A DNA stretch of 64,000 bases from IMG/VR virus record IMGVR_UViG_3300025770_000870, positions 124,001-188,000 of that record. One strand, given 5' to 3'. How positions within the stretch are numbered: position 1 is the first letter of the stretch; the number at the start of each line of letters is the position of its first letter. Positions 8,152-61,024 of this stretch are shown here, in pieces. The notes beneath the pieces are model-generated. The model was not told where the DNA came from. It saw only the letters and a list, made by a program, of their open reading frames with translations, and made no database searches. Both the position numbers and the translations under genes were made by a program.

Positions 8152-9219
8152 ATGATTAAGAAGTTTAATCAATTTCTAGAAAATAAAAATTCTAGTTACC
8201 TTCTTTACTATGCGTTTGATTGGGATGATAATATATTAAATATGCCAACCGTAATACACCTAGATAAAAAAGATGGTGACTCTTGGGTACCTATTAATGT
8301 TTCAACATCTGATTTCGCTGATGTCAGAAATGATGAGAATTATAGAATGTTGAATAATGATCCTGATGAGGCTTTCTCTGAGTTTAGAGATGGCGGTCCT
8401 CGAGGGGTTGAAGCCTTTTTGATTGATACTAAAGCAGCTATTGCTAGTAACAGTTATGGTCCGGCTTGGGATGATTTTATTGAATGTTTGACAAATGGGT
8501 CAATATTTGCTATAATCACCGCTAGGGGTCACGAACCAGAGGCTATAAGATTAGGTATTGATTGGATACTTGATAATGTTCTAACCGAAGACGAAGTATA
8601 TGATATGTATAATAACTTATTAAAGTTTGAGTATATGTTTGATAGAGTTGAAGGTGAGAAAATATTAAAAGGTGATCCATCTAAGAATGAATTGGTTAAG
8701 AAGTATTTAGATCAATGTGATTTAGTTGGTGTTTCGGCTCCTTCTAGAGGTGGTTCTCCTGAGAATCCGGAAAAGGAAAAGGAAAACGCTCTTATGGATT
8801 ACAAGACTAAGATTAATGACTTTGCTAAAAACCTAGGTATGGAAGCAAAAGTTGGTTTTTCTGATGATGATTTAGGTAATGTTAAACATATTGAAGATTT
8901 AGTTGATAGTTTACATCACGAAAAATTCCCTAATATTGTTGAGTTTGTAGTTAAAAATACAAAAAACCCAGAAGATGTTACCAAAAAAGTTAGAACAATG
9001 AATCTAATAGAGGGTAATGATACCCCAGGTATGGAATCATCTGTTTTAGCATTCACTCAATTTAATAATATGACAAATAAACTGTATCCAACGGATGATA
9101 AAACAAGACAAGATGACTTTGCTAACCAATTCAGAAGACAATCTGAATATCTAGCTAAAACTTCTAAAGACATCTTAGGGAAAAAGAAAGTAAAGAAGAA
9201 ATTTCCTAAAAAGAAATAA
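8152..9219 (+). CDS. HAD-superfamily hydrolase-like protein with CTS-like N-terminus
   Basis: Motif I FDWDDN, motif II ITARGH, motif IV FSDDD; N-terminus MIKKFNQFLE. Confidence 0.7.
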   Translation: MIKKFNQFLENKNSSYLLYYAFDWDDNILNMPTVIHLDKKDGDSWVPINVSTSDFADVRNDENYRMLNNDPDEAFSEFRDGGPRGVEAFLIDTKAAIASNSYGPAWDDFIECLTNGSIFAIITARGHEPEAIRLGIDWILDNVLTEDEVYDMYNNLLKFEYMFDRVEGEKILKGDPSKNELVKKYLDQCDLVGVSAPSRGGSPENPEKEKENALMDYKTKINDFAKNLGMEAKVGFSDDDLGNVKHIEDLVDSLHHEKFPNIVEFVVKNTKNPEDVTKKVRTMNLIEGNDTPGMESSVLAFTQFNNMTNKLYPTDDKTRQDDFANQFRRQSEYLAKTSKDILGKKKVKKKFPKKK

Positions 9220-9225
9220 AAAATT

Positions 9226-9253
9226 AAAAGTCCTCTTAATGAGGATTTTTTTT
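9226..9253. terminator. Intrinsic terminator
   Basis: AAAAGTCCTC-ttaat-GAGGATTTTTTT between convergent genes. Confidence 0.7.
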
Positions 9254-9472
9254 ATGCTTTATAATTTCATCTATTTTAATATCTCTTAATATAGCTTTTT
9301 GATTTTCATTAAACCAACGTTTATAATCGTGATTATAAGCCATATGAACACCATCAATAATTGGACCAGCCTGTCCAAACATAAACTCAGTAAAGCTTTT
9401 ACGCCAATCATCAGGTATATCATCGAATGATACGGGCTCTGTATTTAAATACATCTCCATTAATTTAATCAT
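9236..9472 (-). CDS. Small hypothetical protein with C-terminal RDxKIDxI motif
   Basis: 78 aa ending ILRDIKIDEIIK; TATATTTG element upstream at 9477-9484. Confidence 0.7.
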   Translation of the reverse strand: MIKLMEMYLNTEPVSFDDIPDDWRKSFTEFMFGQAGPIIDGVHMAYNHDYKRWFNENQKAILRDIKIDEIIKHKKNPH

Positions 9473-9519
9473 GTAACAAATATAATAAACTTAACTCTAT
9501 TTTCCTAATATATCATGTA

Positions 9520-10716
9520 ATGGATAAGGGATATATAAAAAATATGATACAGAAGATTCTTGATAAAGAGTTTTCTCATAAACAGAAGCGTCGTCTTAAT
9601 GATTATCACGATAGACTTAACATGGCTTGTCCTTATTGTGGTGATAGTCACCGTCACAAACATTCTAAGAGAGGCAATCTCTATTTCAATAGATTATTCT
9701 ATATTTGCTTCAACTGTGATAAGAAGACTACCTTAGACAAGATGTGTAGGGATTTCAATGAGCAAATTGATCCAGGTAAGAAATTAGAAATGATTGAGCA
9801 CTTAGATAGTGTCATGACTTATAATGATTACGAAAATGAGTTTGTAGATGCTCAATTTGATAATCTAATTGATATGGAAGATCTTGAAGCAGCTTTCGCT
9901 TCTGATATAACTCCCATAAATGACTTCCAACCTATTAAGGTTAATGGTGGTATTTATAAGTACCTTATTGGTAGAGGAATAGGTCCCGAATTACATAAAA
10001 ATATTTATCAAGCAAAGTATCACAAAAACGAAAACGAAAGTGAGTGGATAATAGCTATGTTAAATAGAAGAGGTGATAAGATAATTGGAATGCAAGTCAG
10101 AAACCTTAAAGGTGGTAGACGAAGAATGTTCAAGATATACAATTATGAGAATCTATTAGAGTGGGTTAATCATGGTAAAGAAGAGCCTCTTAATATAGAT
10201 ATGGGTGAGATGGTTATTTATAATAAATTATCATACTATTTTAATATATTGAATGTTAACTTCGAAAAAAGAATAACCGTATTTGAGGGTTATTTAGATT
10301 CTTTATTCTATCCAAATTCAATAGGTTTGGTTGGTGTAAATACTGATTATAGATTTTTGGAGAATAATGGATTTGATATACAATATTTCTTTGATAATGA
10401 TGAAGCTGGTTTTAATAAGTCAGAAGAAAAAATGAATGATGGGTTTTCTGTCTTCTTGTGGAGAAAATTATTAAACGATATAGTTGATAAAAAGAATTCG
10501 ACAGATCCATATAAGCTATTCCATAGAATAGTTAAGGTCAAAGATATAAATAAATTGGCTGAGTTAGTACCAAATCCCTATAAGGCTCTTAAATTACCTG
10601 ATTATTTTAGCACAGATGTTCTTGATGTTAAATGGATACCTAAAATGAATAAAGGTAAGTGGGTAGAAAGAGAAACTGATTATAACAAGAAATTTGATAA
10701 TTTTAATAGATTATGA
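9520..10716 (+). CDS. DNA primase (T4 gp61-like)
   Basis: Zn-binding CPYCGDS...CFNC; TOPRIM VFEGYLDSL and FFDNDEAG. Confidence 0.88.
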   Translation: MDKGYIKNMIQKILDKEFSHKQKRRLNDYHDRLNMACPYCGDSHRHKHSKRGNLYFNRLFYICFNCDKKTTLDKMCRDFNEQIDPGKKLEMIEHLDSVMTYNDYENEFVDAQFDNLIDMEDLEAAFASDITPINDFQPIKVNGGIYKYLIGRGIGPELHKNIYQAKYHKNENESEWIIAMLNRRGDKIIGMQVRNLKGGRRRMFKIYNYENLLEWVNHGKEEPLNIDMGEMVIYNKLSYYFNILNVNFEKRITVFEGYLDSLFYPNSIGLVGVNTDYRFLENNGFDIQYFFDNDEAGFNKSEEKMNDGFSVFLWRKLLNDIVDKKNSTDPYKLFHRIVKVKDINKLAELVPNPYKALKLPDYFSTDVLDVKWIPKMNKGKWVERETDYNKKFDNFNRL

Positions 10717-10760
10717 ATTGGCATGGTGTGTGTTAATACAGGTAGTTGAGTTATTTATAT

Positions 10761-11974: not shown

Positions 11975-12472
11975 TTACTTAAATTTTCTAGTATTCTTAT
12001 AACTTTTAGATTCACCTACTTTCATAGCATATCTTTCATCCTCATCCATTTCATCAAATTCTTTATCAGCTAATTTGTTTGATTCACCTTCTATAAAAGT
12101 AACAACTTCATCCGCCGTTTTGAATTTTTTATTACCAACGTGAAACATCTCTGTTTCTGATGGGAAAATTATCTTTTGTCCATTATATTCTACTTTACCA
12201 TTAGTAACCTCTGATCCTAATTTATCAGCAACTTCTTGTAGTTTATTTGCATAAACATCTCCACCTTCTTCTTCCATTTCTTCTTCCATTTCTTCAGATT
12301 CTAAATCTTCAATGGGAGCTTCTTTAACGTCAGATTCTAAATCTTTGAATTCATGTTCTAAGTCACGAATAGCTAATTCATGTTCTTGTTGGTTTGTATC
12401 AAACTCTTCTTCTGATTCAAACTCTTCGTTTACTCTTTCGTTAACAAATTGATTATATTTTTTAATCATCAC
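11975..12472 (-). CDS. Acidic protein with CTS-like N-terminus
   Basis: MMIKKYNQFVNE; Glu-rich; TTAATATATA at 12498-12507 on the minus strand. Confidence 0.75.
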   Translation of the reverse strand: MMIKKYNQFVNERVNEEFESEEEFDTNQQEHELAIRDLEHEFKDLESDVKEAPIEDLESEEMEEEMEEEGGDVYANKLQEVADKLGSEVTNGKVEYNGQKIIFPSETEMFHVGNKKFKTADEVVTFIEGESNKLADKEFDEMDEDERYAMKVGESKSYKNTRKFK

Positions 12473-12509: not shown

Positions 12510-13019
12510 TTAATTATCAGAATTTTTCAATTCACTTATAACATAATCAACAAAACTATCTAACTCATATTCTAATCCATTACAAAATTCGAATATGTCA
12601 TAATTATCTTGATTCTTTCTCTTTTTTATTGAGAAAAAATCAGGTGATGTTGTTCCATTACTAAATAAAACTATTTTTCCCTCTAACCTACCTTCTATTT
12701 TCTTCTTACTAGGAAATTCTAAATCAGGAACATACATTGTCCCAATATAGTGTATTTCATCACCATAATCTTCTATTTCTTCTAATTCAAATTTGAAATA
12801 TCCATAATCATCTTCGAAAACTCTTTCACTTTCTTCTTTCACTATCTCCTTATGAACTTCTTCTTCACCACCAGAAGCGTGAGCGTCCAAAAAATCTTTC
12901 TCCAGCTTGGTTATAGAAGGCATACCATATTTAGATATTTTATCTAAAATATCATCTACCCTTTCTTTGGTAGTATAACCTTCATATCTCATTAAGTGTT
13001 TCATATTGTTATTAAACAT
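12510..13019 (-). CDS. Hypothetical protein with CTS-like start and DUF6576-like motif
   Basis: MKHLMRYE (likely start 13004) followed by VDDILDKISKYGMPSITKLEKDFL. Confidence 0.7.
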   Translation of the reverse strand: MFNNNMKHLMRYEGYTTKERVDDILDKISKYGMPSITKLEKDFLDAHASGGEEEVHKEIVKEESERVFEDDYGYFKFELEEIEDYGDEIHYIGTMYVPDLEFPSKKKIEGRLEGKIVLFSNGTTSPDFFSIKKRKNQDNYDIFEFCNGLEYELDSFVDYVISELKNSDN

Positions 13020-13696: not shown

Positions 13697-14455
13697 ATGC
13701 TAAATTATAAAGAGTATTTAAAGGAGGCCCAAGATAATCAAGTCGTTGTGTTGGATGATGGACAAGGTGGTAATATGTTTAAGACTGTTAAAAATGGTAG
13801 TAAGAACTCAATTACTTATCTTAATGCTGTTATAAAAAGGTTTATCGAAAGTGTTTATGGATCATCTGGGTTTGTTTATGGTAAACATACTGATATATTT
13901 ATCGATAATAAGATAATTAATGGTGAGTATATATCAAAGATGGTTAATAATTACACCATTTTTAAAAATGTGATAAGAATTAATAATATTAAAGAGGAAG
14001 AATCTTTTTATAATTTTATGTTATCTAATCTGAATAATATTTATTCACCAAATGGTAAATTCTTTTTAGAACAATCATTACCTATTTTAATAAACACAAC
14101 TAGAAGGGGAAATGTACTTGAAAAAATGGCTAAGGAATCCTTTTTAAAGTATTCTAAAGAAAAAGATATCGAGATTACTATACAAAACCCTTCTGTTGAT
14201 GAAGATATAAACGGTGTTGATTTCAAATTCTTATCCAATGGTAGAAGTTTTACTGTTCAAGTAAAGCCATTTACTGATTATAAGTATATTGGTGATAAAA
14301 TTTTCATAAAGACAGAAGGATCTTTATCATTGAATACAAACTACTTGATACTATGTGATGGTAAGAATTGTATTAAATTAAGAAATACACCCTCTAATCC
14401 AGTTAAAATAAAAGGTAATACTTTTATTTCAAGTAAATCTAATCTACTTATTTAA
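13697..14455 (+). CDS. PD-(D/E)xK-like nuclease-fold protein with CTS-like N-terminus
   Basis: EDINGVDFKF...FTVQVKP pattern; N-terminus MLNYKEYLKE; TTAATATATA at 13682-13691. Confidence 0.55.
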   Translation: MLNYKEYLKEAQDNQVVVLDDGQGGNMFKTVKNGSKNSITYLNAVIKRFIESVYGSSGFVYGKHTDIFIDNKIINGEYISKMVNNYTIFKNVIRINNIKEEESFYNFMLSNLNNIYSPNGKFFLEQSLPILINTTRRGNVLEKMAKESFLKYSKEKDIEITIQNPSVDEDINGVDFKFLSNGRSFTVQVKPFTDYKYIGDKIFIKTEGSLSLNTNYLILCDGKNCIKLRNTPSNPVKIKGNTFISSKSNLLI

Positions 14456-16495: not shown

Positions 16496-16879
16496 ATGAG
16501 GTTAAAGAAGTTTAATAGTTTCAAAATTAATGAATCAGAAGAGTTGATGGAAACTCCTGTTGAGACTGGTAGCAAAGCATCTACATTAACTGGTGAGGTT
16601 ACTCTTTATAGACTCACTTCTCATCCGGTTGTTGATCTTTCTTCACCTGGTGAGTATTATGTATGTGATAAAGGTGATATCGACCCTTCTATATTAGATA
16701 AGAAAGAAAGTTCTGAGTTATATTTAATTACGGTTACTTGTGATTCTTCTAATATTGACTTAGATAAATCTGAAATGGAGATTGCTAACTTAGGAAACGA
16801 TTCTATCGTAGCAGTTAAAGATGATAATGTTTGTAAGGTTATTAGTGTTACTCCTTATGGAAACAATCCAGTAGATTAA
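16496..16879 (+). CDS. Hypothetical protein with CTS-like N-terminus
   Basis: MRLKKFNSFKINE; TTAATATATA at 16467-16476. Confidence 0.75.
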   Translation: MRLKKFNSFKINESEELMETPVETGSKASTLTGEVTLYRLTSHPVVDLSSPGEYYVCDKGDIDPSILDKKESSELYLITVTCDSSNIDLDKSEMEIANLGNDSIVAVKDDNVCKVISVTPYGNNPVD

Positions 16880-22868: not shown

Positions 22869-23195
22869 ATGGTAAAAAAATGGAATCAATTTATTAGAGA
22901 ATTCATAGAGAACTCGGATAATGTTATCGATATTAAAATGCAAGAGATAAGAACACTTATAAATGGTGTTTCTGATGGCCAGAACATAGTATATGAATGG
23001 GAGAATAAAAATGATCATCAATTAATAGTTAATTTCACTAAAGATGATTTATCTATTAGATATGAATTTGACATCGATAATTTGATAGTTAAAAAAATAG
23101 TTGGTGATACTGTTGATTTCACCAATCAGGCAAAATCCATAAGTGGTGGGTTAATTAATATTGAAAAGGATATACATATGGTTTTAAGTATTTAA
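22869..23195 (+). CDS. Hypothetical protein with CTS-like N-terminus
   Basis: ATG at 22869 gives MVKKWNQFIREFIE, right after a TTTAATATAT motif; the ORF track starts at 22842. Confidence 0.7.
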   Translation: MVKKWNQFIREFIENSDNVIDIKMQEIRTLINGVSDGQNIVYEWENKNDHQLIVNFTKDDLSIRYEFDIDNLIVKKIVGDTVDFTNQAKSISGGLINIEKDIHMVLSI

Positions 23196-25266: not shown

Positions 25267-25297
25267 AAAAACCCACTCAGATTTTGAGTGGTTTTTT
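25267..25297. terminator. Bidirectional intrinsic terminator
   Basis: AAAAACCCACTCA-gattt-TGAGTGGTTTTTT. Confidence 0.8.
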
Positions 25298-26542: not shown

Positions 26543-26684
26543 TTAACCTTTAGCTAAAAAGGATGAGTTGATGAAATAAATATCTTCCCACTCAGGATCA
26601 CGACCACTTGTATTTTTTTAGTAGTATATCATAAACATCTGATTTTATATCATTACTTTCGTTAAATTTTCTTAGATATTTCAT
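26543..26684 (-). pseudogene. Decayed CTS-tagged mini-gene
   Basis: ATG overlapping the upstream TGA gives MKYLRKFNESNDIKSDVYDILLKKYKWS* (26598-26684); another frame past an A7 run continues GRDPEWEDIYFINSSFLAKG*. Confidence 0.5.
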
Positions 26685-43972: not shown

Positions 43973-46900
43973 TTATGAGTTTTGAAACCCACCCGCGTTA
44001 ATAGCTCCTGTTCTAAGTATAGTAATGTTGTTAACAATTATACCCATACCTTTGATTGGTTCTACATAAGTATCAATAACACCAATTTGGTTATCAATAA
44101 TTTCAGATGTGTTATTCTCTTCATCCATTTTGTTAAAGAAGTTGTATAAACCATTCTTACTTACATAAGTTTCACAAATAACATCTGCTCTAAGTTTAAT
44201 TTCTGCTCTTACATCAGGAGTGTTAAACTTCCATTGGTAGTCTAATAACATTCTTGATAATTCTCTTTCAAGTTCAATAAGTACTTCTCTTACGTGTATG
44301 TAAGAAAGAGCTGATTTATAAAGAGTTTGAGCTGTATTCTCAGTTTCAATTTGGTAACCTCTATTTCTCTTGAATACAATTGGATTCATTTGAGCTTGAT
44401 TCAAGTATTCGATGTCTTCTTGTGTGAAGTCCATTTCTATACCAGAAGTGTTAGTAATCTTACCATTTGTTACACCAGCTGCTATTGTCCAAGGAGTAAC
44501 AGATGTTATATTAGAAATATGCTTTCTCATATAAGTTGTTGCTACAAAGGATGCAGGTGGGAATTCTAATGGTCTACCATTATCATTCACCGTAACATAA
44601 GGTGTGAAATAACCAACAGTAGTTGTACCTGCTCCATCACCGAATGAGTAAAGGAATGCTGGGTTACTTTCTGGGTCACCTCCACTTGCTACATATTTAA
44701 CTTGTAATGTACCTTCTGAATTAACAAATGATGGAGAAGATGAATTTTTGAACGATCTAAGTGATGGCATATTTAAGAAACCAAAGGCATCTAATCTATC
44801 ACCACATATATCAACTAATTGTTGTTTTGATCTTTCGGTTAATCCTAATCCAAATGAGTCAATTAAATATCTAAAGTCTAATGCTTCTTTGTTAATTAAA
44901 GCTTTGAACATTGGAGTTCCTTTAGCTACTAAGTTAAGTACTTGATTTTGTTTATCTTCTGTTCCATCAGGTAAAGAAGCTTGTCTAACCTTGAATCCTT
45001 TCATAGTGATAGCTTTGTATGTTGTCGCATATTGGTCAACTGATACATATCTCATTGTTTGTACATCACCATTAAAAACATAAGTAGCTATTCTAGAATC
45101 ACAAGATATTTCAGTTAAACTAGCATCACCTACATATTGTCTCTTACTAAGAATTCTTGTTAATCTTCTTGGTACTTCACCAACTGCAAGAGTTGTAGGG
45201 TCATAATAAGCTTCTAAGAAATCACCAACTTTTATTTCGGTGTATCTAGAACCATCTATTAATATCTTATTTGGTATTTGAATATATCCAGTAGGTAATT
45301 CTACTTCAACTGTTTGTTTGAAGTTTGTTTTACCTGATTGTATATAAAATGTGTTATTAGCTTGTATATCAACTGCTTCAGTTGCTAGTAATAACTCATC
45401 CATAAATTGAACATTCAATACGCCATCGTTATCAAGATATAATTTAAGGTAGTGTCTTCTAGAAGAATAGTTATAAACTATACTCTGTGAGAATAAAGTT
45501 TCAGTCTCTACTTCCTCAGTTACTTGATAAGCGTAGAATGTACCGCCTAGAATACCATATCCTAATTTTACAGCCAATTCATTTGGAGTATCTCCTGGCT
45601 CTACTGAGTTTCCTACTATTGTAAATGTTCCTTTATTTACTTTCGAAGTAGGGAACAATAATTGCTCAAATGTTTGTAAATCAATTTCATCAGAGAAGGA
45701 CGCGACACTTGAATCAAATACGATATAATCATATCCAGCGTATGATGAAGTAGCTGATGTAGCATTTTCACCATCGATAAATGATATATCAACTGTTGTT
45801 CCAAGAACATTAGTAGCACTCGCACTATTATCAACATAAAGTCTATTATCATAAAAGAAATCTTTTGTGTTAATAACACCATCATAGTATTTACCATAAA
45901 GGTTAGAGTATTTAGCTACTACCCCAGAAGCTGGTGTCGAGACTAAATCAGTTGTTGTTACTTCGTCAGTACCTAATATAAACTCATTATCTTCTGTATA
46001 GAATACTAATAAACCATCAGTTATTACATTTACTAATTCAACTGTTGTTAATCCAGTATTTAATGTGAATGATTTATTTTCTAATGTAGAAGTAACAATA
46101 TCAGTTATAGTCATTAATCCCAAACTAACTTTAGTCATTGAATTATCCAATAACATAGTCATTTTATTTTTATTAGGACTATCAATCAGATTAACCAATC
46201 TGTTATACATTTTGAATCTTCTATATTGTTCGTAGTTTTTAACATCTGATTTTGTATTAGTTCCTAAAAATTCAATTTTTAATGAACCACTTCCTAAATC
46301 AGTTATTGAATAATCGGTACCTAATCTAAAATCAAGGTAATCGAATGTCCCGCTATCACCAACTGTTACATCAGTTACTCCACTCGATATGGCTGTTACG
46401 CTATCAATTGAACCTTGATAGACAGTAAAATCTATATACCCAAGTATAATATCACTTGTGTTAACCGATGGGTTAACATTAGGAGTTAAGCTATTTACTA
46501 ATACAACCTCACCAGTAGCGTCTAATACAAATGTTGATGTATAAGATGCTGTTGAGCTTGTATATGTATAATCACTAGCACTTATAGTAAGTGATGTAGT
46601 TCCTGATACCGGAATATGAGTATCACCTATTACTGCGAATGCGTTTGTTCCAGTAACATACTCTATTACTAAAGATGCTGATGATCCTGTTATTGGTGTA
46701 GATCTAGTAACATTATAAACAGACCCTTCACCGAAAAATCCAGTTCTATTATTACCATTCTCCAATATTCCACTTGATAATGGTCCAATAGAACCATTTA
46801 TCGGACCATCAAATGCATGTGATGCTTGACTTCCGTATGCTGAATATGTTCCTAACATAGCAGTTACGTTACCTGGTAAATCAAGAGGTGTATTTGTCAT

Positions 46901-47905
46901 CACCACTGATTCTGCGATTGTTTCCTTATATGATAAGAATTCAATATCAGTTTCGTTAACACCAACTAATGTATTACCTAATAAATCAAGTAATCCTGTA
47001 TAATAATCTTGTTCAACTAAATCATTGTTAAATGAACAAAATAGCCCAGTTGAATCTGTATCTCTGTTTATTGATGTTTCAATAAATATATTTCTTCCGT
47101 TTAAGTCTCTGAAATAAGGTATTAAAGATAAACCTTCGTAATAAGAAAGTAAAGTGACATTTCTATCATTAGCAAAATTACTAACTTGGTCTTTTACTAA
47201 ACCAGAAGCGTTGAAATATTCACTCCATCTTGGATCAACTGCTAATTCTTGATAGTTTGACCAGTCTCCAGCAATAACAACAACATCAATTAAGTAATCT
47301 GATGCAAAATCATTAGCATTTACATAAGTTGGCATTTTCTCAACAGAACCATACCATTCTAGTAATGTTCTATCAAAACCATTTAGTTGAGATTTGAACA
47401 CAAAAGTAGTTATAGGCTTATCCGATAAATTAGTAAGATTAAATGCTCTTTCAGTATATCCTGTGTTATTTTTTGTTAAGTTGATAAATGATTCGGTATC
47501 TCTTTTCCAGAAACCTGTTGTATCAAACATTCTTCTATAAGGTCCTTCTCTCTTTATATCATTCTTGTATTCAGCAGAAGCAGATAGTGATTTATATTCA
47601 ATCACATCTAAGTTATCATCTGTTAATAACAAGTTCATAGCATATATAGGAGCAGTCTCTAACATTTTAGCAATCGTTCTGTGGAAGAAAGAACCTTTTC
47701 TTTCTAAATTACGATCTAATTGTCCAAAGATAGCTTCTAAATCTGTTATATTAGTTAGTCTAATCGGTGTGTTAACAGGTCCTTTTCTGGATACACCCAT
47801 CACAAGATTGGTAATCCCTTCAACAGTTGGACTGCTGATTACAGACGCGTCAAATTCTTCGATGAAGATTCCTGGTCTTTTGTATTTTCCAATTTGAATT
47901 GCCAT
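43973..47905 (-). CDS. Contractile tail sheath protein (T4 gp18-like), 1310 aa
   Basis: N-terminal KRPGIFIEEFD...GVSRKGPVNTP; C-terminal YLNQAQMNPIV, LSYIHVREVLI, IDTYVEP. Confidence 0.92.
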   Translation of the reverse strand: MAIQIGKYKRPGIFIEEFDASVISSPTVEGITNLVMGVSRKGPVNTPIRLTNITDLEAIFGQLDRNLERKGSFFHRTIAKMLETAPIYAMNLLLTDDNLDVIEYKSLSASAEYKNDIKREGPYRRMFDTTGFWKRDTESFINLTKNNTGYTERAFNLTNLSDKPITTFVFKSQLNGFDRTLLEWYGSVEKMPTYVNANDFASDYLIDVVVIAGDWSNYQELAVDPRWSEYFNASGLVKDQVSNFANDRNVTLLSYYEGLSLIPYFRDLNGRNIFIETSINRDTDSTGLFCSFNNDLVEQDYYTGLLDLLGNTLVGVNETDIEFLSYKETIAESVVMTNTPLDLPGNVTAMLGTYSAYGSQASHAFDGPINGSIGPLSSGILENGNNRTGFFGEGSVYNVTRSTPITGSSASLVIEYVTGTNAFAVIGDTHIPVSGTTSLTISASDYTYTSSTASYTSTFVLDATGEVVLVNSLTPNVNPSVNTSDIILGYIDFTVYQGSIDSVTAISSGVTDVTVGDSGTFDYLDFRLGTDYSITDLGSGSLKIEFLGTNTKSDVKNYEQYRRFKMYNRLVNLIDSPNKNKMTMLLDNSMTKVSLGLMTITDIVTSTLENKSFTLNTGLTTVELVNVITDGLLVFYTEDNEFILGTDEVTTTDLVSTPASGVVAKYSNLYGKYYDGVINTKDFFYDNRLYVDNSASATNVLGTTVDISFIDGENATSATSSYAGYDYIVFDSSVASFSDEIDLQTFEQLLFPTSKVNKGTFTIVGNSVEPGDTPNELAVKLGYGILGGTFYAYQVTEEVETETLFSQSIVYNYSSRRHYLKLYLDNDGVLNVQFMDELLLATEAVDIQANNTFYIQSGKTNFKQTVEVELPTGYIQIPNKILIDGSRYTEIKVGDFLEAYYDPTTLAVGEVPRRLTRILSKRQYVGDASLTEISCDSRIATYVFNGDVQTMRYVSVDQYATTYKAITMKGFKVRQASLPDGTEDKQNQVLNLVAKGTPMFKALINKEALDFRYLIDSFGLGLTERSKQQLVDICGDRLDAFGFLNMPSLRSFKNSSSPSFVNSEGTLQVKYVASGGDPESNPAFLYSFGDGAGTTTVGYFTPYVTVNDNGRPLEFPPASFVATTYMRKHISNITSVTPWTIAAGVTNGKITNTSGIEMDFTQEDIEYLNQAQMNPIVFKRNRGYQIETENTAQTLYKSALSYIHVREVLIELERELSRMLLDYQWKFNTPDVRAEIKLRADVICETYVSKNGLYNFFNKMDEENNTSEIIDNQIGVIDTYVEPIKGMGIIVNNITILRTGAINAGGFQNS

Positions 47906-47965: not shown

Positions 47966-48526
47966 CTATTTTTGCTCTTGAGATGAGAGATTTTTTACAT
48001 GATCCCTCATATCTTGCTCCATTTTAACCATTTTTTCTTTGTGGTCTTTTTCTTTTCCTACTAAATCTTGTTGTATTTCACTTATTTTGCTGGATCTTTC
48101 GGACATTCTATTTTTAATATCACTTATTTTGAATTCAACAGCTTTTTTTGTTTCACTATCCTCTGATAAACCAAGAGATTGTTGTAAATCATCTAATTTT
48201 ATTTTATCATTTGAATTATCATCTTGTGATTTATTTATATCCTTTTCTAACTTAGCTAAGTGTGCATATTCTACTAGAAAGGGATTTCTATCCTTTCCGC
48301 TCTGAACATCTGTCTCACCTAGTATCTTTTCTAGCTCTGGTTTGATATCAGCGCCTTCTTTAGAATATAATGCATCGATTTGTGATTTCTTAGTCTTATA
48401 GTCTTTCATATTAGACATAATAGTATTCATCTTCTCTTTAGACATAACAACGTCTGGAGTATCAGTATCTCCTATCTCAAATTCATCAGCTTCTAGAAAT
48501 AATTTATACTTTTTTAGATATTTCAT
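47966..48526 (-). CDS. Coiled-coil protein with CTS-like N-terminus
   Basis: MKYLKKYKLFLE; heptad-rich; 4-nt overlap with the upstream gene. Confidence 0.75.
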   Translation of the reverse strand: MKYLKKYKLFLEADEFEIGDTDTPDVVMSKEKMNTIMSNMKDYKTKKSQIDALYSKEGADIKPELEKILGETDVQSGKDRNPFLVEYAHLAKLEKDINKSQDDNSNDKIKLDDLQQSLGLSEDSETKKAVEFKISDIKNRMSERSSKISEIQQDLVGKEKDHKEKMVKMEQDMRDHVKNLSSQEQK

Positions 48527-51369
48527 TTTTCTAAATAACCTTTTGCTTTATCAACTGATATATCACCATAAGCATTTTGTGTTGCTGATGTTGGTAGTAA
48601 GTATTGTTCACCGGAACCTTCACCTTCTTTTACATAAAATGTGTATAAATCTTCTATCTTGCCTAAGTCAACTTCTTCTGTTTTCAGTTCTGAGGAACGT
48701 TCTTTAAGAGTAGTTAAATTAATAGATTTCAATTTTAAATTGATACCTTCTTTTAAGAGACCACCTTTAGCATCGAATAATTTATTAGATATTCTAGCAT
48801 AATGTATAGTAGAGTCATTATCATTTAATGATGATGATAAGTCACCTTTCATACCCTTAACATTTTCACCTTTAATATATTTACTGATGTATCCAAATGT
48901 TTTTGAATATTTCAAATAAGTAAAATCACTATCACCTGCTATTACTATCATAAAATATGAATTATTTAGGTTAAAAATACAACCAGGTTTATCATTTACC
49001 TCTTTAGACTTTTTGAACTCAGCTATTATATTACCTTTTGTTTCATCAGCAACTTCAGCATTTCCTTCAACCTCTTTTCCACCCGTATAATCTAATTTAT
49101 TTGAATCAACATCAACTTTGAAGTATTTGCTGATAAATTTATGTTGTGCGCCACCACCTTTTCCACCCGAGGACCTGTATAAAGTATCTCCGTCTAACAT
49201 ATCGTTCATAAATTTGAGTAGTACTTTACCACCACCTTCTACTCTACCACTTTTCTTACCTTTATCACTAATTGATGTTGGTGAAACATTTACCCTATCA
49301 TCTGCTTTACCAACTTGTATAATAGTCGATTCATCGAATAAAACTGTATATTTTGAATCCTTTATTATATCAAGAACAGCATCTTCCCATTTGGTGAATA
49401 TTCTTATGTTTCTATAAGGGCCCATTCCAACTTTAAATCCACTTGATTCAGTATTAACCTCAGGAGATCCACTACCTATATACTCATACTCTCTGAATTT
49501 TTTATTAGATACTTTACCACCACTTCTACCCGTTGGTATTGTCTGTGATGTGTGTAATTTATAAGCTCTGTTAAATATCTTAACAATTTCTAGTATAGGA
49601 TCAATACCGTTTATTTTATATGTAGTACCCTCTTTCTCCATTTTTACCAACCTCTGTTCCAGATTTTTAGCATCTTGTTCGGTAACAGACCATTTTCTCA
49701 AATATTCTTCACTGAAAAATTTATTCCATGGTATGGATAAATCATATCTATTCTCTTTTTCGATAGATTGATCCTCTTTTGAAACATCTCCAGATGGTTT
49801 ATCTTTTGTTGTATCATCAACCACATCTTCACCTTCCGCTTCAAATATTTTTCTGAAACTTTTATATCTTAATAACTTACCTTCGTTTTTCTCTACCTTA
49901 TCCTCTGGTTTTTCATTTTCTGTAACCTCTGGCTCCTGTTCTAAAATAGCACTCATTGTTTCATTAAATGATTTTATTGAATTTTTCAATGCACCATCTA
50001 TATCTTTCCCCCATTCATCAATTTCGGTTAAATCTCCTGATTTTGAAACACTATATAAATTTTTAATATGATTACCAAGTGCCTCACTACCGGATAATAA
50101 ACTATCTAAATTTTCTGATACTGATGTTTTCTTAATATGATCATATAGGTTTTTAACAGAAGCATATTTTTGCATCATTTCCGCGTTACCAGCTGATAAT
50201 TTATTTTTATTGTCATCAGACATTTTATCATAACTTGATATCAATCCTTGTAATTCTACTAGATTATTAGGATCTTCATTCATAAAATTAAATAATGCCT
50301 TTGTAGCATTTAGAATAGGTATATTATCTTGCTTTTTATCATCAGTTCCCTCATTTAGTGAGAATTTTCTAAAACTATCGTTCATAGACTCGGCATATAA
50401 TTCGGTATCTGGTACTTTATTCCATGTTTCAGCTTTAGCAACAGATTTTAGAAAACTTTCTCCTTCTTTGGATTTTTTGAAATCCTCCATAGTACCAGAA
50501 TTTCCTTTTTCTGACCAAATTTTGTAAGCAACTTCCTGTTTAAATTTCTTTCTAGTATGTTCTCCTGGTTTAAGATTAGCTCCCTTACCAAGAGCTTTTT
50601 GACTTTTTAGCAACTCAGCTAGTTTTTTCTGATAAAGATCTTCACCTTTAACTCCCCATTCAAAATGAACCTGTTCGGGTTCTTCAACTTCTTTTGGAGC
50701 TGGTAATGACCTTACTGATTTAATCTTCTTAAAAGACTCTAATATACTAGATATGGATTTTATATTTGCCATATAAAGTTGATAAGGTATTTTTTCACCA
50801 TCAGTTTCCTCACCATCAGTTTCCTCATCATCAGTTTCCTCATCATCAGTTTCCTCATCATCAGTTTCCTCCATTTCTTTAAGTTCTGCTAAAAATTCAG
50901 TTAACTTTTCTAAAACTTCTTGTCTATCACCTTCACTTTCATCAGAGTATAATACCACTTCTGTTATTGCATAAATAGTTTCAGTTGTAACTCTTATTAT
51001 TTCATCTAAATGATTTTTACCTTCCGCTTCAGGTTCTTTTATTGCTTTTATTAATTTCCCTATTAAAATAGAAATAGACAACATATCAATTTCTTTATTT
51101 GTTGCTTCATCAATCTCAGCTCCGTTTAATTTAGCAGTATCTACTAAATAATCAAATTGTGTTTTTAGTCTTTTAATAACAGAGTCTATTCTAACTAAAT
51201 CTATTCCTATTTGAGCCTTTCTAGCAAATGAGTGTAACATTCTTCCTAATAATGAGTCTCCCCATGCTATATCATTGGCGAATGGTCCTGCTCCTGAAAC
51301 AACAGCTTCGTTAACGACTTTATATTTTGCTGACTTTAAGTATTCAGTTCTACTTGATAGATACTTCAT
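48523..51369 (-). CDS. Large putative internal virion protein
   Basis: 948 aa; MKYLSSRTEYL start; internal SFRKFSLNE and LLRYKSFRKIFE segments; acidic repeats. Confidence 0.7.
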   Translation of the reverse strand: MKYLSSRTEYLKSAKYKVVNEAVVSGAGPFANDIAWGDSLLGRMLHSFARKAQIGIDLVRIDSVIKRLKTQFDYLVDTAKLNGAEIDEATNKEIDMLSISILIGKLIKAIKEPEAEGKNHLDEIIRVTTETIYAITEVVLYSDESEGDRQEVLEKLTEFLAELKEMEETDDEETDDEETDDEETDGEETDGEKIPYQLYMANIKSISSILESFKKIKSVRSLPAPKEVEEPEQVHFEWGVKGEDLYQKKLAELLKSQKALGKGANLKPGEHTRKKFKQEVAYKIWSEKGNSGTMEDFKKSKEGESFLKSVAKAETWNKVPDTELYAESMNDSFRKFSLNEGTDDKKQDNIPILNATKALFNFMNEDPNNLVELQGLISSYDKMSDDNKNKLSAGNAEMMQKYASVKNLYDHIKKTSVSENLDSLLSGSEALGNHIKNLYSVSKSGDLTEIDEWGKDIDGALKNSIKSFNETMSAILEQEPEVTENEKPEDKVEKNEGKLLRYKSFRKIFEAEGEDVVDDTTKDKPSGDVSKEDQSIEKENRYDLSIPWNKFFSEEYLRKWSVTEQDAKNLEQRLVKMEKEGTTYKINGIDPILEIVKIFNRAYKLHTSQTIPTGRSGGKVSNKKFREYEYIGSGSPEVNTESSGFKVGMGPYRNIRIFTKWEDAVLDIIKDSKYTVLFDESTIIQVGKADDRVNVSPTSISDKGKKSGRVEGGGKVLLKFMNDMLDGDTLYRSSGGKGGGAQHKFISKYFKVDVDSNKLDYTGGKEVEGNAEVADETKGNIIAEFKKSKEVNDKPGCIFNLNNSYFMIVIAGDSDFTYLKYSKTFGYISKYIKGENVKGMKGDLSSSLNDNDSTIHYARISNKLFDAKGGLLKEGINLKLKSINLTTLKERSSELKTEEVDLGKIEDLYTFYVKEGEGSGEQYLLPTSATQNAYGDISVDKAKGYLEK
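50795..50872 (-). repeat. 15-nt coding tandem repeat x5 (ETDDE/ETDGE)
   Basis: catcagtttcctca(t/c) units. Confidence 0.85.
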
Positions 51370-58766: not shown

Positions 58767-59360
58767 ATGAAGCATATTAGAACGTATGAAAAATATCGTA
58801 TTGTAAAGAACAGATCTGAAATTATCAAAGAAGCTGTTCTACAAGTTAATGATATTTATAAAGTAAAGACAATGATTGATATTCCTCAATCTTTGATTAA
58901 CTCTTATGTTAAGAAAGTTAAAGAAACTACTGGTAAGAACCTAAGACAATTTTTTGGTGATGTTGACATCGCTGAGGAAATTGTTAAATATATTAATATG
59001 AACAATCTTGATATAGAGAAGATTCCAGGTGGAGCTTTGATGGGTGGTCAAGAAGAAACACAAGTTCAGCAAGCTCAACCAGAAGCACAACCACAAGCTC
59101 AAATGCAACCTCAGGTTCAACCAGAAGCACAACAAACACAACCACAAGGTGAGTTTGAAGAGCCACAAGCAGATGCTCAAGTACAGGCTCAAGATGGTCA
59201 AGTACAAGTTCAAGCAGATGGTCAAACACAAGTACAAGATGGTCAAGTACAGGCTCAAGATGGTCAAGTACAGGCTCAAGATGGTCAAACACAAGGTCAA
59301 GTACAAGGTCAAGCACAAGACGAAGATGAAGAAGAGGACGAAGAAGAACTTCCACTTTAA
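58767..59360 (+). CDS. Protein with CTS-like N-terminus and Gln-rich repeat tail
   Basis: MKHIRTYE; QAQDGQV repeats; TTAATATATA at 58733-58742. Confidence 0.75.
   Translation: MKHIRTYEKYRIVKNRSEIIKEAVLQVNDIYKVKTMIDIPQSLINSYVKKVKETTGKNLRQFFGDVDIAEEIVKYINMNNLDIEKIPGGALMGGQEETQVQQAQPEAQPQAQMQPQVQPEAQQTQPQGEFEEPQADAQVQAQDGQVQVQADGQTQVQDGQVQAQDGQVQAQDGQTQGQVQGQAQDEDEEEDEEELPL
59175..59320 (+). repeat. 21-nt coding repeats (QVQAQDG)
   Basis: caagtacaggctcaagatggt and degenerate copies. Confidence 0.8.
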
Positions 59361-59383
59361 TTTATAGAAAATATTAAAAAATG

Positions 59384-59415
59384 AAACCCATCAAATAAAC
59401 TTTGATGGGTTTTTT
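59384..59415 (+). terminator. Intrinsic terminator
   Basis: AAACCCATCAAA-taaac-TTTGATGGGTTTTTT. Confidence 0.85.
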
Positions 59416-59433
59416 ATTTAATATATACTTACA

Positions 59434-60048
59434 ATGAGATACCTAAAGGCATATGAGAATTATAATACTGATACAACACTTATAATTGTTGATGTTCAAA
59501 AATCATTTAAGAAATTCTTTTCTGAGATGTACATAAATAAATTAAAAAAGTATTGTAATGAATTTGTCAATGTTTATCAAATCTGGGATAACCATACAGA
59601 TGGTAAAATTGTTGATAAAGACTACTTATATGATAAAAATCCTGAAATTCCAATACATGATGATTTATACCATTTTCCTAACCAAAGTGAGTTAATCGAA
59701 AAGAGATATAATTATGATGTAGATGCTGATTTTTATAAAAAAATTCTAGATAAGGAAGTTTATAAAGAGATTAGTGATAAAGAGGATAATAAACAATTAA
59801 AAAAAGGTGACTTTTTCCGAACAAAAGAGGGAACTATTATAGTTTATATTGGTAATAATCATAAATGGTTCCAAGTTCCTATTAAATTATATAAACATCT
59901 TGTTGAATTAAGGGGTAAGAGTGTTATTATTGTTGGTGGTTCTGATTCTGAATGTTTGGAGGATATTATTACATCTGCTGAAAGTCTTGGTGTTAATATT
60001 AAAAGAGATTATAAGTATATCTACTCAGCAAATCATTGTCCTATCTAA
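59434..60048 (+). CDS. Isochorismatase/nicotinamidase-fold cysteine hydrolase with CTS-like N-terminus
   Basis: LIIVDVQKSF, IWDNH, IEKRY, VGGSDSECL (Asp/Lys/Cys-like triad); N-terminus MRYLKAYE; TTAATATATA at 59418-59427. Confidence 0.6.
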   Translation: MRYLKAYENYNTDTTLIIVDVQKSFKKFFSEMYINKLKKYCNEFVNVYQIWDNHTDGKIVDKDYLYDKNPEIPIHDDLYHFPNQSELIEKRYNYDVDADFYKKILDKEVYKEISDKEDNKQLKKGDFFRTKEGTIIVYIGNNHKWFQVPIKLYKHLVELRGKSVIIVGGSDSECLEDIITSAESLGVNIKRDYKYIYSANHCPI

Positions 60049-60422
60049 ATTACTGAAGCATAAACCTCATAGTCTTTGAGATTGAATGTTATAACCATAT
60101 ACTCTTGGTGTCTATCTGGATCTTCGAAAAACTCAACTGTTAGCCCATAGTCTATACCATCTATTTCCTCTATATAATCTGATATTTGTGCTCTAATATC
60201 TCCTTCGATAGCTTCTGCTGATAATCTTGTTTCATATAATAGAGCTGGTAAATCTGCTCCGAAGTTTGGATCACCTAATAAATCACCTTTATTAGTGAAA
60301 ATGACCATTTCGTATTTTTGTACGATCACCCTAATCACATCATCCTCAATCATTTCTTTATCGGTGAATCTTGGGTGACCAGGGTAACCTATGTAGAAGT
60401 CTATAAAATTAATATCTGCCAT
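60045..60422 (-). CDS. Baseplate wedge protein (gp25-like)
   Basis: IFTNKGDLLGDPNFGADLPALLYE. Confidence 0.8.
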   Translation of the reverse strand: MADINFIDFYIGYPGHPRFTDKEMIEDDVIRVIVQKYEMVIFTNKGDLLGDPNFGADLPALLYETRLSAEAIEGDIRAQISDYIEEIDGIDYGLTVEFFEDPDRHQEYMVITFNLKDYEVYASVI

Positions 60423-60427
60423 GTGTT

Positions 60428-60449
60428 TATATATTAATTTTTATATATA
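60428..60449. promoter_or_regulatory. Back-to-back late-promoter-like motifs
   Basis: TTAATATATA on minus (60428-60437) and TTTATATATA on plus (60440-60449) serve divergent genes in a 32-nt gap. Confidence 0.55.
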
Positions 60450-60454
60450 CTCAT

Positions 60455-61024
60455 ATGAAATATCTGAAATTTTTTGAATCTTATAGAGGAACTGTATCTG
60501 TTAATAGAGATATTTTTATAAAGGTTTTATCTGATTATAGTAGTATATATGATGATGGTTTGGTTACACAATTAGAGGAATTGGGATTTGAGAGTAGTGA
60601 TGTAATTGCTGATATGATAGAAGATTCATTGAATAATGGTGATCGTATAAGTTTAGAGGCTATAACACTTTTAGTTGATGAGATATCAAGAGGTAATTCT
60701 GAGAGGAGCGCAAGTAAGTTACAGGATATTTATAATGAATGTGAATATCATTTAAATAATAGTACTGTTGATGTTATTGATAACTTGAAAGATATATTCT
60801 CTGAATATGTTGATGATAATAAAGCAATGATATATAAAACTGGTGATAAATCTGACAACCGATGTGTCGTTTTACTAAAACAGGTTGATGTTTTGTTAAA
60901 TATCGATTTCGATGAAGTATTAAATAGGGTTAAAGAATTTGTAAACTTAAAACATATGGAATATGTTGGTAGTAAAGACCGAATTAAATTTGAGTTTTAT
61001 GAAAGATATCCTGATGAAGATTAG
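60455..61024 (+). CDS. Hypothetical protein with CTS-like N-terminus
   Basis: MKYLKFFES. Confidence 0.72.
   Translation: MKYLKFFESYRGTVSVNRDIFIKVLSDYSSIYDDGLVTQLEELGFESSDVIADMIEDSLNNGDRISLEAITLLVDEISRGNSERSASKLQDIYNECEYHLNNSTVDVIDNLKDIFSEYVDDNKAMIYKTGDKSDNRCVVLLKQVDVLLNIDFDEVLNRVKEFVNLKHMEYVGSKDRIKFEFYERYPDED

Follow-up and report, generated by a model that had tools for sequence, protein, structure and literature searches.

A T4-like putative capsid-loading tag at the N-termini of more than 80 proteins of a marine phage

In phage T4, the capsid-targeting sequence (CTS) of the internal proteins IPI-III, together with the related propeptides of Alt and gp24, is a peptide of about 10 residues located at the extreme N-terminus of otherwise unrelated proteins. 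The tag reads MKTYQEFIAE and is cut once next to it (PMC8442874, PMC5694885), while Alt begins with MELITELFDE and gp24 with MAKINELLRE. Its function is proven, but only a handful of proteins carry it, and the T4 internal proteins are highly basic (PMC8442874). The giant phages phiKZ and SPN3US package tens of head proteins, some of which are injected, and these are processed after Glu by a gp21-related protease at an A/S/G-x-E motif (PMC5694885, PMC13282480). Furthermore, polyvalent proteins of phages and conjugative elements are injected together with the DNA and carry enzymes which act on host defences, such as methyltransferase, GNAT, NUDIX-like and peptidase domains (Iyer et al., as cited in PMC7824862).

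The stretch analysed here, hereafter the window, comprises 64,000 nucleotides (positions 124,001 to 188,000) of the 241,918-bp IMG/VR record IMGVR_UViG_3300025770_000870, a marine myovirus of the Mahaphage clade, the largest known phage clade. A sequence-only reading of the window had proposed that about 18 unrelated proteins share a CTS-like N-terminal tag, that most of their genes lie behind the motif TTAATATATA, that replication genes lack the tag, and that the phage possesses a greatly expanded tag-directed system for packaging and injecting cargo. The observation was confirmed and proved to be understated. All 18 peptides are encoded where they were placed, 10 on the + strand and 8 on the - strand, although one start codon had to be corrected and two members are doubtful (Table 1). 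Across the whole record, 84 of the 363 genes called are tagged, about a quarter of the total, of which 16 solid ones lie in the window; the count of about 18 is therefore too low by a factor of four or more, and the system belongs to a whole clade and not to this phage alone.

Table 1. Features of the window, in window coordinates unless marked "genome" (coordinates of the whole record). The arrow marks the boundary after Glu at which cleavage would occur; LR745206 is a related genome used for ortholog comparison.
Position	Strand	Feature	N-terminus	Observations
8152..9219	+	Tagged gene, 355 aa	MIKKFNQFLE↓N	Followed by a HAD-like DWDDN motif; the ortholog in LR745206 keeps the tag
11975..12469	-	Tagged gene, 164 aa	MIKKYNQFVNE↓R	Likely start is the ATG at 12469; the extra M of the sequence-only reading is a GTG at 12472; an acidic stretch follows the tag
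12510..13004	-	Tagged gene, 164 aa	MKHLMRYE↓G	DUF6576 match
13697..14455	+	Tagged gene, 252 aa	MLNYKEYLKE↓A	Ortholog in LR745206 begins MKKFTEYIKE; promoter motif ends 6 nt before the ATG
16496..16879	+	Tagged gene, 127 aa	MRLKKFNSFKINE↓S	
22869..23195	+	Tagged gene, 108 aa	MVKKWNQFIRE↓F	Promoter motif ends about 4 nt before the ATG
25296..25619	-	Tagged gene, 107 aa	MIYNFKKFNEE	Start at the internal ATG at 25619
26598..26684	-	28-aa ORF, doubtful gene	MKYLRKFNES...	A tag with almost no cargo, probably a remnant
26681..27253	-	Tagged SAM-dependent methyltransferase, 190 aa	MKHLLTRKIFE↓N	Pfam domain starts at residue 46
28041..28361	+	Tagged gene, 106 aa	MNHIKKYE↓SF	
38266..39012	+	Tagged gene, 248 aa	MKLTKYLE↓F	Weaker tag; the ortholog begins MKLNKFYEF; promoter motif ends 4 nt before the ATG
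39708..40358	+	Tagged gene, 216 aa	MKHLEKFYNYITE↓S	Inside an operon, with no promoter motif of its own
41710..41868	+	Tagged ORF, 52 aa	MKYIKTFE↓SF	Promoter motif ends 4 nt before the ATG
47966..48526	-	Tagged gene, 186 aa	MKYLKKYKLFLE↓A	Acidic linker; lies between the sheath gene and the 948-aa gene
48523..51369	-	948-aa protein, doubtful member	MKYLSSRTEYLKSAKYKVVNE↓A	MKYLSSRTEYL is below the motif threshold, but the N-terminus is conserved in LR745206; no family match
58767..59360	+	Tagged gene, 197 aa	MKHIRTYE↓K	
59434..60048	+	Tagged gene, 204 aa	MRYLKAYE↓NYNTD	Followed by the domain starting TLIIVDVQ; clade-wide family with 1213 homologs; fold weakly isochorismatase-like
60455..61024	+	Tagged gene, 189 aa	MKYLKFFE↓S	Promoter variant TTTATATATA ends about 5 nt before the ATG
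7052..7717	-	ClpP/S49-like serine protease, untagged		Second protease candidate; not the T4-type protease, which lies outside the window at genome 198213-200354
43973..47905	-	Tail sheath, untagged		Promoter motif ends 27 nt before the ATG; reference for the late, structural promoter class

The motif is confined to N-termini to a degree not expected by chance. A position matrix built from the tags scores 8 or more at 60 of 363 N-termini, against 5 of 63,057 internal positions, and the four best internal hits all begin with Met. At the DNA level, the pattern ATGAARYAYHTNAAR occurs 33 times in the record, against 1 for the reversed control. The claim that the tagged proteins are otherwise unrelated holds as well: after removal of the first 14 residues, the 84 proteins form 76 groups with no BLASTP link at E below 1e-3, and Pfam finds one member each of lysozyme, NUDIX, methyltransferase, GNAT, HD, NFACT-R and others. 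The tag is 8 to 14 residues long, with a hydrophobic-K-K/T-aromatic-x(0-3)-aromatic-x(0-2)-Glu core often followed by Ser, Asn or Gly. In 81 of 84 tags a Glu is found at positions 7-14, against 106 of 279 untagged proteins, and 59 of 84 have hydrophobic-x-Glu there, against 50 of 279 (p = 1e-18).

The association with TTAATATATA holds loosely. By inspection of the upstream sequences, 13 of the 18 genes have the motif or a one-base variant within 60 nt, and genome-wide the figure is 55 of 84 tagged genes against 73 of 279 untagged. The same motif precedes the capsid protein, portal, sheath, terminase and fibre-like genes, but not the polymerase, SbcD or clamp loader genes, and 35 of its 77 exact sites sit upstream of tagged genes. 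That this promoter is late is inferred from which genes carry it; a gp55-like late sigma factor is encoded. The statement that replication genes lack the tag holds for the helicase, DNA polymerase, SbcD and clamp loader, but the sheath, tube and terminase also lack it.

Several lines of evidence indicate that selection acts on the peptide and not on the RNA. Synonymous codon use within the tags equals that of the genome (K AAA 0.67 against 0.72, Y TAT 0.78 against 0.81, and L spread over five codons), and orthologs keep the pattern through substitutions. In the orthologous family of the gene at 59434, Glu8 has zero entropy in 109 sequences, whereas residues 11-13, in the linker which follows, are the most variable in the protein. 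AlphaFold2 gives pLDDT below 50 and no secondary structure for residues 1-11, with the predicted fold starting at residue 15, placing the tag outside the folded domain. In the ortholog family just downstream of the capsid gene, the flavours MIKKYNYFFES, MKYLKYFES and MRNLKKFNNFLKEG replace one another in front of the same domain.

The genome encodes a T4-type head module. PF07068 (Gp23) scores 81 bits on genome 200440-202170, and the N-terminus of this capsid protein, KKWSPVLENMG, aligns with NKWKPLLEGEG of T4 gp23. The upstream 713-aa protein, a gp21-type protease fused to a scaffold, aligns with T4 gp21 and keeps NRNxRxY, GExxHP and VSSR; since its Peptidase_S77 Pfam match is below the curated cut-off (19-20 bits against 27), the protease assignment rests on the alignment and on gene position. 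Its scaffold carries ten tandem repeats KNIAYSEYIAEN (YSEYIAE↓N), which the tag resembles. The tag also resembles the end of the capsid-protein propeptide, WMSEYAEFHSINE↓NAY (EYAEFHSINE↓NAY), which is almost invariant in about 60 relatives. This predicted cleavage site aligns with FLTE↓AEIGG of T4 gp23 and with ALME↓N of phage PAU, whose mature length of 520 of 585 residues comes from N-terminal sequencing (PMC5646251). Moreover, an 84-aa ORF at genome 103604-103858 reads MRYLRTYKKFTE↓NAYVAAS..., joining a tag to a copy of the mature capsid N-terminus exactly at that Glu. BLASTP aligns it to capsid-protein residues 30-120 (E 4e-9), with the tag lying over the propeptide end and Glu over Glu.

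An analogous tag was found in the cultured relative Sphingomonas (Sphingobacterium) phage PAU (GenBank JQ362498), where at least 14 genes start with MKT[LI][ST]xL[YF]E and cluster around the portal, protease and capsid genes. They include the scaffold gp152 as well as gp142 and gp154, which the depositors annotated as internal capsid proteins.

The interpretation given by the sequence-only reading is partly supported: the analogy to the T4 CTS survived every test that could be run and is strengthened by the new evidence, and the tag probably serves to load a very large protein cargo into the virion. In this view, which is held with moderate confidence, the tagged genes would be transcribed late together with the head genes from the TTAATATATA promoter, probably read by the gp55-like sigma factor. 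The flexible tag would imitate the scaffold repeat and the last helix of the capsid-protein propeptide and would co-assemble with the scaffold core inside the prohead; the gp21-type protease would then cut after the Glu, releasing the mature cargo inside the capsid, and the cargo would leave with the DNA at infection. What the analysis establishes is that the tag is real, N-terminal only, present on unrelated folds, under selection at the protein level and outside the folded domain, that it resembles the capsid-protein and scaffold sites, and that it co-occurs with a T4-type head module, whereas docking, cleavage, retention in the virion and injection are inferred, in the absence of a virion proteome or N-terminal sequence for any tag-bearing protein. 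Some features fit this model poorly. A set of 84 of 363 genes (23%) is far beyond any known internal-protein set, and most tagged genes are scattered and not in the head module. Tagged proteins are net acidic (-0.058 charge per residue against -0.006 for untagged ones), and acidic cargo packed next to DNA is unusual. Furthermore, 25 of 84 tags lack a hydrophobic-x-Glu site, and the commonest flavour (LKTFE↓S) has Thr or Lys at P3.

An alternative which remains possible, although less likely, is that the tag is a protein-level address or handle for something other than the capsid, e.g. docking to a shared phage or host hub, sorting to a phage-made compartment, or a degron allowing a phage protease, such as the ClpP-like enzyme of the window, to time the life of many accessory proteins. 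A modular, disordered N-terminal peptide under selection fits any short linear recognition motif, and the number of tagged proteins, their acidity and their cytoplasm-type enzymes (methyltransferase, NUDIX, GNAT, HAD) look more like an intracellular effector set than like classic head proteins. However, this reading does not explain why the tag copies the propeptide end and the scaffold repeat, why a tag replaces the propeptide exactly at the cleavage Glu in the 84-aa ORF, why the PAU scaffold carries PAU's version of the tag, or why tagged genes share the structural-gene promoter.

Two further readings, in which the peptide would be a by-product or would itself have no function, are considered improbable. 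Many of these genes look leaderless or translationally coupled, and Bacteroidota make little use of Shine-Dalgarno pairing, so that an A/U-rich 5' coding block could be selected for initiation. Indeed, the promoter-like motif ends only 4-6 nt before the ATG in 35 of 84 tagged genes, against 21 of 279 untagged (odds ratio 8.8, p = 3e-12), no Shine-Dalgarno sequence is visible upstream of tagged genes, and several allowed substitutions are single-base neighbours, for example Y/H/N = NAY codons. Against this stand the synonymous codon frequencies, the invariance of Glu8, and the variation of tag length while the aromatic and Glu pattern is kept; in addition, 49 of 84 tagged genes lack the short-spacing arrangement, 34 have no motif at all, and untagged genes with the same spacing start with quite different peptides, such as signal peptides. 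Alternatively, promoter and first codons could form a recombination cassette spreading by duplication and illegitimate or homologous exchange, similar to the mobile regulatory cassettes which shuffle genes and are reportedly described for T4-type phages (PMC2839356). Tagged genes do occur in tandem arrays (for example genome 8238-13359, 19638-25948 and 207573-209626), promoter and tag are often contiguous, and internal or duplicated tags exist alongside the tag-only 28-aa ORF. Nevertheless, the peptide pattern is maintained by purifying selection over deep divergence, in MCP-related genomes with 52-78% capsid-protein identity and in ortholog families at 70% identity, while the underlying DNA is not conserved beyond what codon usage predicts. 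Cassette spread may thus explain how tags are acquired, but not why they are kept.

In comparison with T4, the pattern is nearly the same, as tags such as MKSYTEFLLE, MKKYTEFVNE and MIKKYNQFVNE also end in Glu and likewise occur in a genome with a gp23-type capsid protein, a gp21-type protease and a scaffold core. The differences lie in the number and acidity of the tagged proteins, in the fusion of the protease to the scaffold, and in the commonest flavour (MKYLKTFES), which has a two-residue N-terminal extension and often no Ile/Leu at P3. PAU belongs to the same broad group of T4-like jumbo phages of Bacteroidota hosts, with a capsid protein 26% identical; the consensus and spacing of its tag differ, the family, for which no describing paper was found, is smaller, and it is confined to the head module. 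In phiKZ and SPN3US the propeptides are long (20 to more than 100 residues) and are not a shared short tag, and only about 8-19 proteins are processed. With the polyvalent proteins the idea of delivering enzymes together with the DNA is shared, but there many domains are fused into one giant protein, while here each domain would be a separate small protein with its own address tag.

The virus record under study measures 241,918 bp; the window covers its bases 124001-188000, and the GC content of the window is about 30%. Its major capsid protein is encoded outside the window and is gp23-like, with PF07068 scoring 81 bits, whereas a PDB sequence search with the same protein returned no hit. Comparison by tblastn yielded capsid-protein identities of 78% with LR745206 (634 kb), 73% with LR756502 (642 kb), 52-53% with LR756504 (636 kb) and LR756501 (735 kb), 36% with LR756500, 30% with the Lak megaphages, and 25-28% with the Tenacibaculum phages PTm1 and pT24 and with phage PAU. 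The four complete genomes of 634, 636, 642 and 735 kb are the largest reported by Al-Shayeb et al., who place all their largest genomes in the Mahaphage clade and predict Bacteroidetes hosts for them (PMC7162821). The record is labelled 89% complete, but an identical capsid gene lies on the 483-kb contig IMGVR_UViG_3300027996_002186 and the nearest complete relatives measure 634-642 kb; the record is therefore a fragment of a much larger genome. The DNA occurs in seawater metagenomes from 2012 to 2020. Within the window, PHROG scans identified a helicase, part of a DNA polymerase, NMNAT, a radical-SAM protein, a DNA methyltransferase, SbcD, the tail tube, the sheath, the large terminase, the clamp loader and a ClpP-like protease, none of which carries the tag, in agreement with the earlier claim that replication genes lack it. 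The DNA polymerase match covers only a 402-aa ORF and the C-terminal part of the PHROG profiles, and the polymerase may be split or interrupted.

The sequence-only reading had listed about 18 unrelated proteins sharing an N-terminal tag similar to the T4 capsid-targeting sequence, and this observation holds, since all 18 N-termini are encoded as it stated. Three of them call for caution: one start is a GTG, the ATG three bases further on giving MIKKYNQFVNE; one ORF is only 28 aa long, consists of little more than a tag (MKYLRKFNES...) abutting the stop codon of the tagged methyltransferase gene, and is probably the remnant of a lost cargo gene; and MKYLSSRTEYL, on a protein of 948 aa, is a weak match. 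In the whole record, 363 genes were called (91% coding). A position matrix built from the clearest tags scores 8 or more at 60 N-termini, but at only 5 of 63,057 internal positions; the four best internal hits all start with Met, and two are probably the true starts. After curation, 84 tagged genes were retained. The two flavours distinguished in the sequence-only reading are one motif in different registers, as MKYLKKFNE and MIKKFNQFLE share the core [LI]-K-K-aromatic-x-x-aromatic ... Glu. In the ortholog family just downstream of the capsid gene, MIKKYNYFFES, MKYLKYFES, MKHLKQFES and MRNLKKFNNFLKEG replace one another in front of the same domain. A further flavour may be represented by a 427-aa protein at the end of the window which starts MKNLKLELFNFKKNL and corresponds to MKNFKLELFNFKNRL in LR756501; this conserved N-terminus is tag-like but falls below the threshold. 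A relative seen in metatranscriptome run X16 has a 9-nt tandem duplication inside the tag, giving MKYLKYLKFFES, which echoes MKYLMKYLKTYES in the present record and suggests that tags tolerate, or arise by, small duplications.

The tagged proteins are otherwise unrelated, as had been claimed. After removal of the first 14 residues, the 84 proteins form 76 groups with no BLASTP link, and Pfam finds single examples of phage lysozyme, NFACT-R, SAM methyltransferase, NUDIX, HD, GNAT, a winged helix and others, while most tagged proteins have no family in the Pfam and PHROG scans. Derivation from one diverged paralog family was rejected by the BLAST clustering and the distinct Pfam folds. Domain paralogs exist with and without the tag: a tagged and an untagged NUDIX protein are both present, and HAD-like proteins start MTKTLYCFDFDGTL or MRINRFEEYDTLYVFDFDDTL.

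Coordinates of the features discussed (window, positions in the window; record, positions in the 241,918-bp record; PAU, positions in the phage PAU genome)
Feature	Reference	Position	Strand
ClpP/S49-like 'head maturation protease' (phrog_94, E 1e-33), in addition to the T4-type protease next to the capsid gene	window	7052-7717	-
GTG start, with the likely ATG start of MIKKYNQFVNE	window	12472 (GTG), 12469 (ATG)	
Promoter-like motif, examples for spacing to the ATG	window	13677-13696, 38246-38265, 41690-41709, 59414-59433	
DNA polymerase match	window	14448-15656	-
28-aa tag-only ORF	window	26598-26684	-
Tagged SAM methyltransferase	window	26681-27253	
Metatranscriptome depth peak	window	59140-59533	
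Tagged gene of the family with 1213 homologs	window	59434	
Tag with a 9-nt duplication in the relative of run X16	window	60455	
427-aa protein with tag-like N-terminus	window	63188-64000 (gene runs on to 64471)	
Tag MKYLMKYLKTYES	record	8238	
84-aa ORF joining a tag and a capsid-protein copy (1604-1855 in the excerpt L020)	record	103604-103858	+
gp55-like late sigma factor	record	188610-188975	
713-aa protease-scaffold fusion	record	198213-200354	+
Major capsid protein	record	200440-202170	
Stretches L035 and L216, with the PAU tag family	PAU	95131-136639 (L035), 1-50000 (L216)	

Several lines of evidence indicate that the conserved unit is the peptide. Synonymous codon frequencies within tag codons 2-12 match the genome (K AAA 0.67 against 0.72, Y TAT 0.78 against 0.81, E GAA 0.70 against 0.74, with Leu using five codons), without the excess conservation expected of an RNA-level element. 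Orthologs in LR745206 keep the pattern through amino-acid changes, for example MRYLKAYENY against MKYIRTYESY. One tagged gene of the window belongs to a family with 1213 database homologs; in 109 aligned members Met1, Lys5, Phe7 and Glu8 are near-invariant, Glu8 having zero entropy, residues 11-13 are the most variable in the protein, and the conserved domain starts at TLIIVDVQ. An AlphaFold2 prediction on that alignment gave a pTM of 0.79, with pLDDT below 50 and no secondary structure for residues 1-11 and the first strand beginning at residue 15. The tag is therefore a separately constrained, flexible N-terminal peptide outside the fold. A Foldseek search with the same protein returned only weak isochorismatase-like matches (E 0.02, TM 0.44). 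The tags also differ from Sec, Tat and lipoprotein signal peptides, which have a hydrophobic core of 10-20 residues after a basic N-region, being hydrophilic and amphipathic and followed by acidic linkers; true signal peptides in this genome look different, for example MKYKILLLSIALFF.

The genome encodes a T4-type head module. The 713-aa gene upstream of the capsid gene aligns over its first ~190 residues (of the 200 submitted) with T4 gp21, PAU gp151 and the PTm1 'prohead core scaffolding protein and protease', and keeps NRNxRxY, GExxHP and VSSR, although its Pfam S77 score is below the cut-off. Its middle part holds ten tandem 14-residue repeats, KNI[AS]Y[SA]EY[IL][AS]EN[LV]D (KNIAYSEYIAENLD), and it ends in a long acidic tail. 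The T4 tag is MKTYQEFIAE; it is cut once next to the tag and suffices to load foreign proteins (PMC8442874, PMC5694885, PMC3012670). In the T4 genome itself, gp24 starts MAKINELLRE, Alt starts MELITELFDE, and in gp23 the sequence FLTE is followed by AEIGG. The capsid protein described here starts MSHIRIDKQKAMKKWSPVLENMG...DWMSEYAEFHSINENAYANASNV, and the stretch W-M-[SA]-E-Y-A-E-[FY]-H-S-I-N-E-N-A-Y is almost invariant in about 60 relatives whose capsid proteins are 69-100% identical. By alignment, the predicted cleavage site INE|NAY corresponds to T4 LTE|AE and to PAU ALME|N. The mature PAU capsid protein has 520 of 585 residues by N-terminal sequencing (PMC5646251), which places the cut within one residue of this Glu. 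Three elements therefore share aromatic-x-x-aromatic-(hydrophobic-x)-Glu: the tags, the scaffold repeats and the end of the capsid-protein propeptide. Moreover, an 84-aa ORF reads MRYLRTYKKFTENAYVAASTAGSGSVVAAQPGSLPG... and is made of a tag, a copy of the mature N-terminus of the major capsid protein and an acidic tail. BLASTP aligns it to capsid-protein residues 30-120 (E 4e-9), with its tag over the propeptide end and its Glu12 over the predicted cleavage residue, Glu44, of the capsid protein. In this natural chimera, which may be a decoy or a small internal peptide, a tag stands exactly where the propeptide stands. In T4, cleavage occurs C-terminal to Glu in the context (L/I)-x-E; here, where mature N-termini can only be predicted, 81 of 84 tags have Glu at positions 7-14 and 59 of 84 have hydrophobic-x-Glu.

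The exact motif TTAATATATA occurs 77 times in the record, against 11 for the reversed control, and 64 sites lie within 60 nt upstream of a gene start on the correct strand, 35 of them preceding tagged genes. The motif or a one-base variant precedes the capsid protein, portal, sheath, terminase, protease-scaffold and the large fibre-like genes at 19-31 nt, whereas the polymerase, SbcD, clamp loader, NMNAT and radical-SAM genes lack it. A gp55-like late sigma factor is also encoded. By analogy with T4 TATAAATA, the motif is inferred to be the late promoter, an inference drawn from sequence and gene content alone. Metatranscriptomes contributed only short contigs from the phage and its relatives, with no transcript starts and no timing, and a depth peak in the window is a low-complexity GAA repeat shared with other organisms. 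The spacing between motif and ATG is bimodal, the short class occurring mostly at tagged genes and at some signal-peptide genes. In 35 of 84 tagged genes the motif ends only 4-6 nt before the ATG, against 21 of 279 untagged genes (p = 3e-12), an arrangement which would give leaderless or nearly leaderless mRNAs in a phage of Bacteroidota. The remaining 49 tagged genes lack that arrangement, so the tag does not depend on it.

On a broader scale, strict counts of the pattern ATGAARYAYHTNAAR gave 33 matches in this record (reversed control 1), 59 in LR745206 (control 1), 30-37 in each of four IMG/VR genomes of 385-676 kb that are at least 95% complete (controls 0-4 each), 1 in PTm1 (control 1) and 5 in Lak-B5 (control 3). 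Tags are also visible in LR756502, LR756504, LR756501 and LR756500, while none was found in the regions of PTm1, pT24 and Lak-B5 that were read; the tag is therefore not general to all T4-like phages of Bacteroidota. The 24-nt pattern encoding MKYLK[KT]FE hits more than 116 stretches of viral contigs, a lower bound, and 90 of 94 matches examined start an ORF of at least 40 aa, each with different cargo. In 596 Gb of bacterial and archaeal genomes the same pattern hits only 6 stretches, all of them MAG contigs. Many very AT-rich contigs (GC 17-25%; among the IMG/VR stretches L037-L116, e.g. IMGVR_UViG_3300029983_000007) carry MKYLK[KT]FE genes behind a different conserved upstream motif, AAATAAATTTAACAT-ATG. 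To determine whether these are giant eukaryotic viruses, five records were searched, and neither an NCLDV capsid hit nor a gp23 hit was found, although these records are only 7-46% complete according to CheckV and the possibility is not excluded. The cultured phage PAU lacks the tag motif described here but has its own, MKT[LI][ST]xL[YF]E, on at least 14 genes, 13 within the 41.5 kb around its head module and one elsewhere, which include the scaffold gp152 (MKTLTQLYEA) and gp142/gp154, annotated as internal capsid proteins.

The interpretation advanced in the sequence-only reading, an expanded tag-directed system for packaging and injecting cargo, is partly supported, and in a sharpened form it remains the best reading: the tag would be a T4-type capsid-targeting and cleavage peptide that imitates the scaffold repeat and the propeptide end, multiplied to an unprecedented number of cargo proteins. 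The analysis itself establishes a short N-terminal peptide, constrained at the protein level and shared by unrelated proteins in a genome with a T4-type head module, whereas docking, cleavage, retention in the virion and ejection are inferred in the absence of proteomic evidence. Other features weigh against this reading. Tagged proteins are net acidic (-0.058 charge per residue against -0.006 for untagged ones), the 28 residues after the tag are 21% Asp/Glu, 25 of 84 tags lack hydrophobic-x-Glu, and 23% of genes is a very large cargo set.

Among the alternatives, a chance or AT-bias artefact is rejected by the contrast between N-terminal and internal positions and by the reversed-pattern control. 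A translation-initiation element is opposed by the codon analysis, and a recombination cassette carrying a functionless peptide by the deep conservation of the pattern. A non-capsid address or degron is the most serious rival.

If the tag works as in T4, a quarter of the genes of a globally distributed clade of huge phages, which includes the 634-735 kb record holders, would gain a first functional label as virion cargo delivered at infection. This would offer an explanation for what part of the giant capsid and genome is for, and it would define a large candidate set of immediate-early effectors against Bacteroidota defences, comprising methyltransferase, NUDIX, GNAT, HD, HAD, lysozyme and many unknown acidic proteins. 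It would also provide a sequence rule that can be scanned in metagenomes, and the idea is directly testable on the cultured relative PAU. A more far-reaching possibility, which is tentative and considered somewhat less likely than not, is that the largest known phages (the non-Lak Mahaphages, 385-735 kb) carry inside the capsid a ready-made proteome of roughly 100 or more different tagged enzymes and small acidic proteins, addressed by imitation of a scaffold repeat and of the end of the capsid-protein propeptide. Much of their extra coding capacity and capsid volume would then serve protein delivery, and the tag would be a natural, programmable cargo-loading signal.

In the literature searched, no paper was found that links capsid targeting to huge phages or describes this motif, its scale or the PAU tag family. 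The capsid-targeting principle is known from T4, and short conserved N-termini have been noted in SPN3US paralogs (PMC5694885). The T4 internal proteins IPI-III are small, highly basic, DNA-associated proteins, a few per genome (basic character, PMC8442874), whereas the tagged proteins are net acidic, have a median length of 160 aa and number 84 in 242 kb. In relation to T4, the system described here is a clade-wide expansion of about tenfold or more, with a proposed mechanism of scaffold and propeptide mimicry, and if the tag works as in T4 it would extend a protein-packaging tool known only from T4 to another host phylum.
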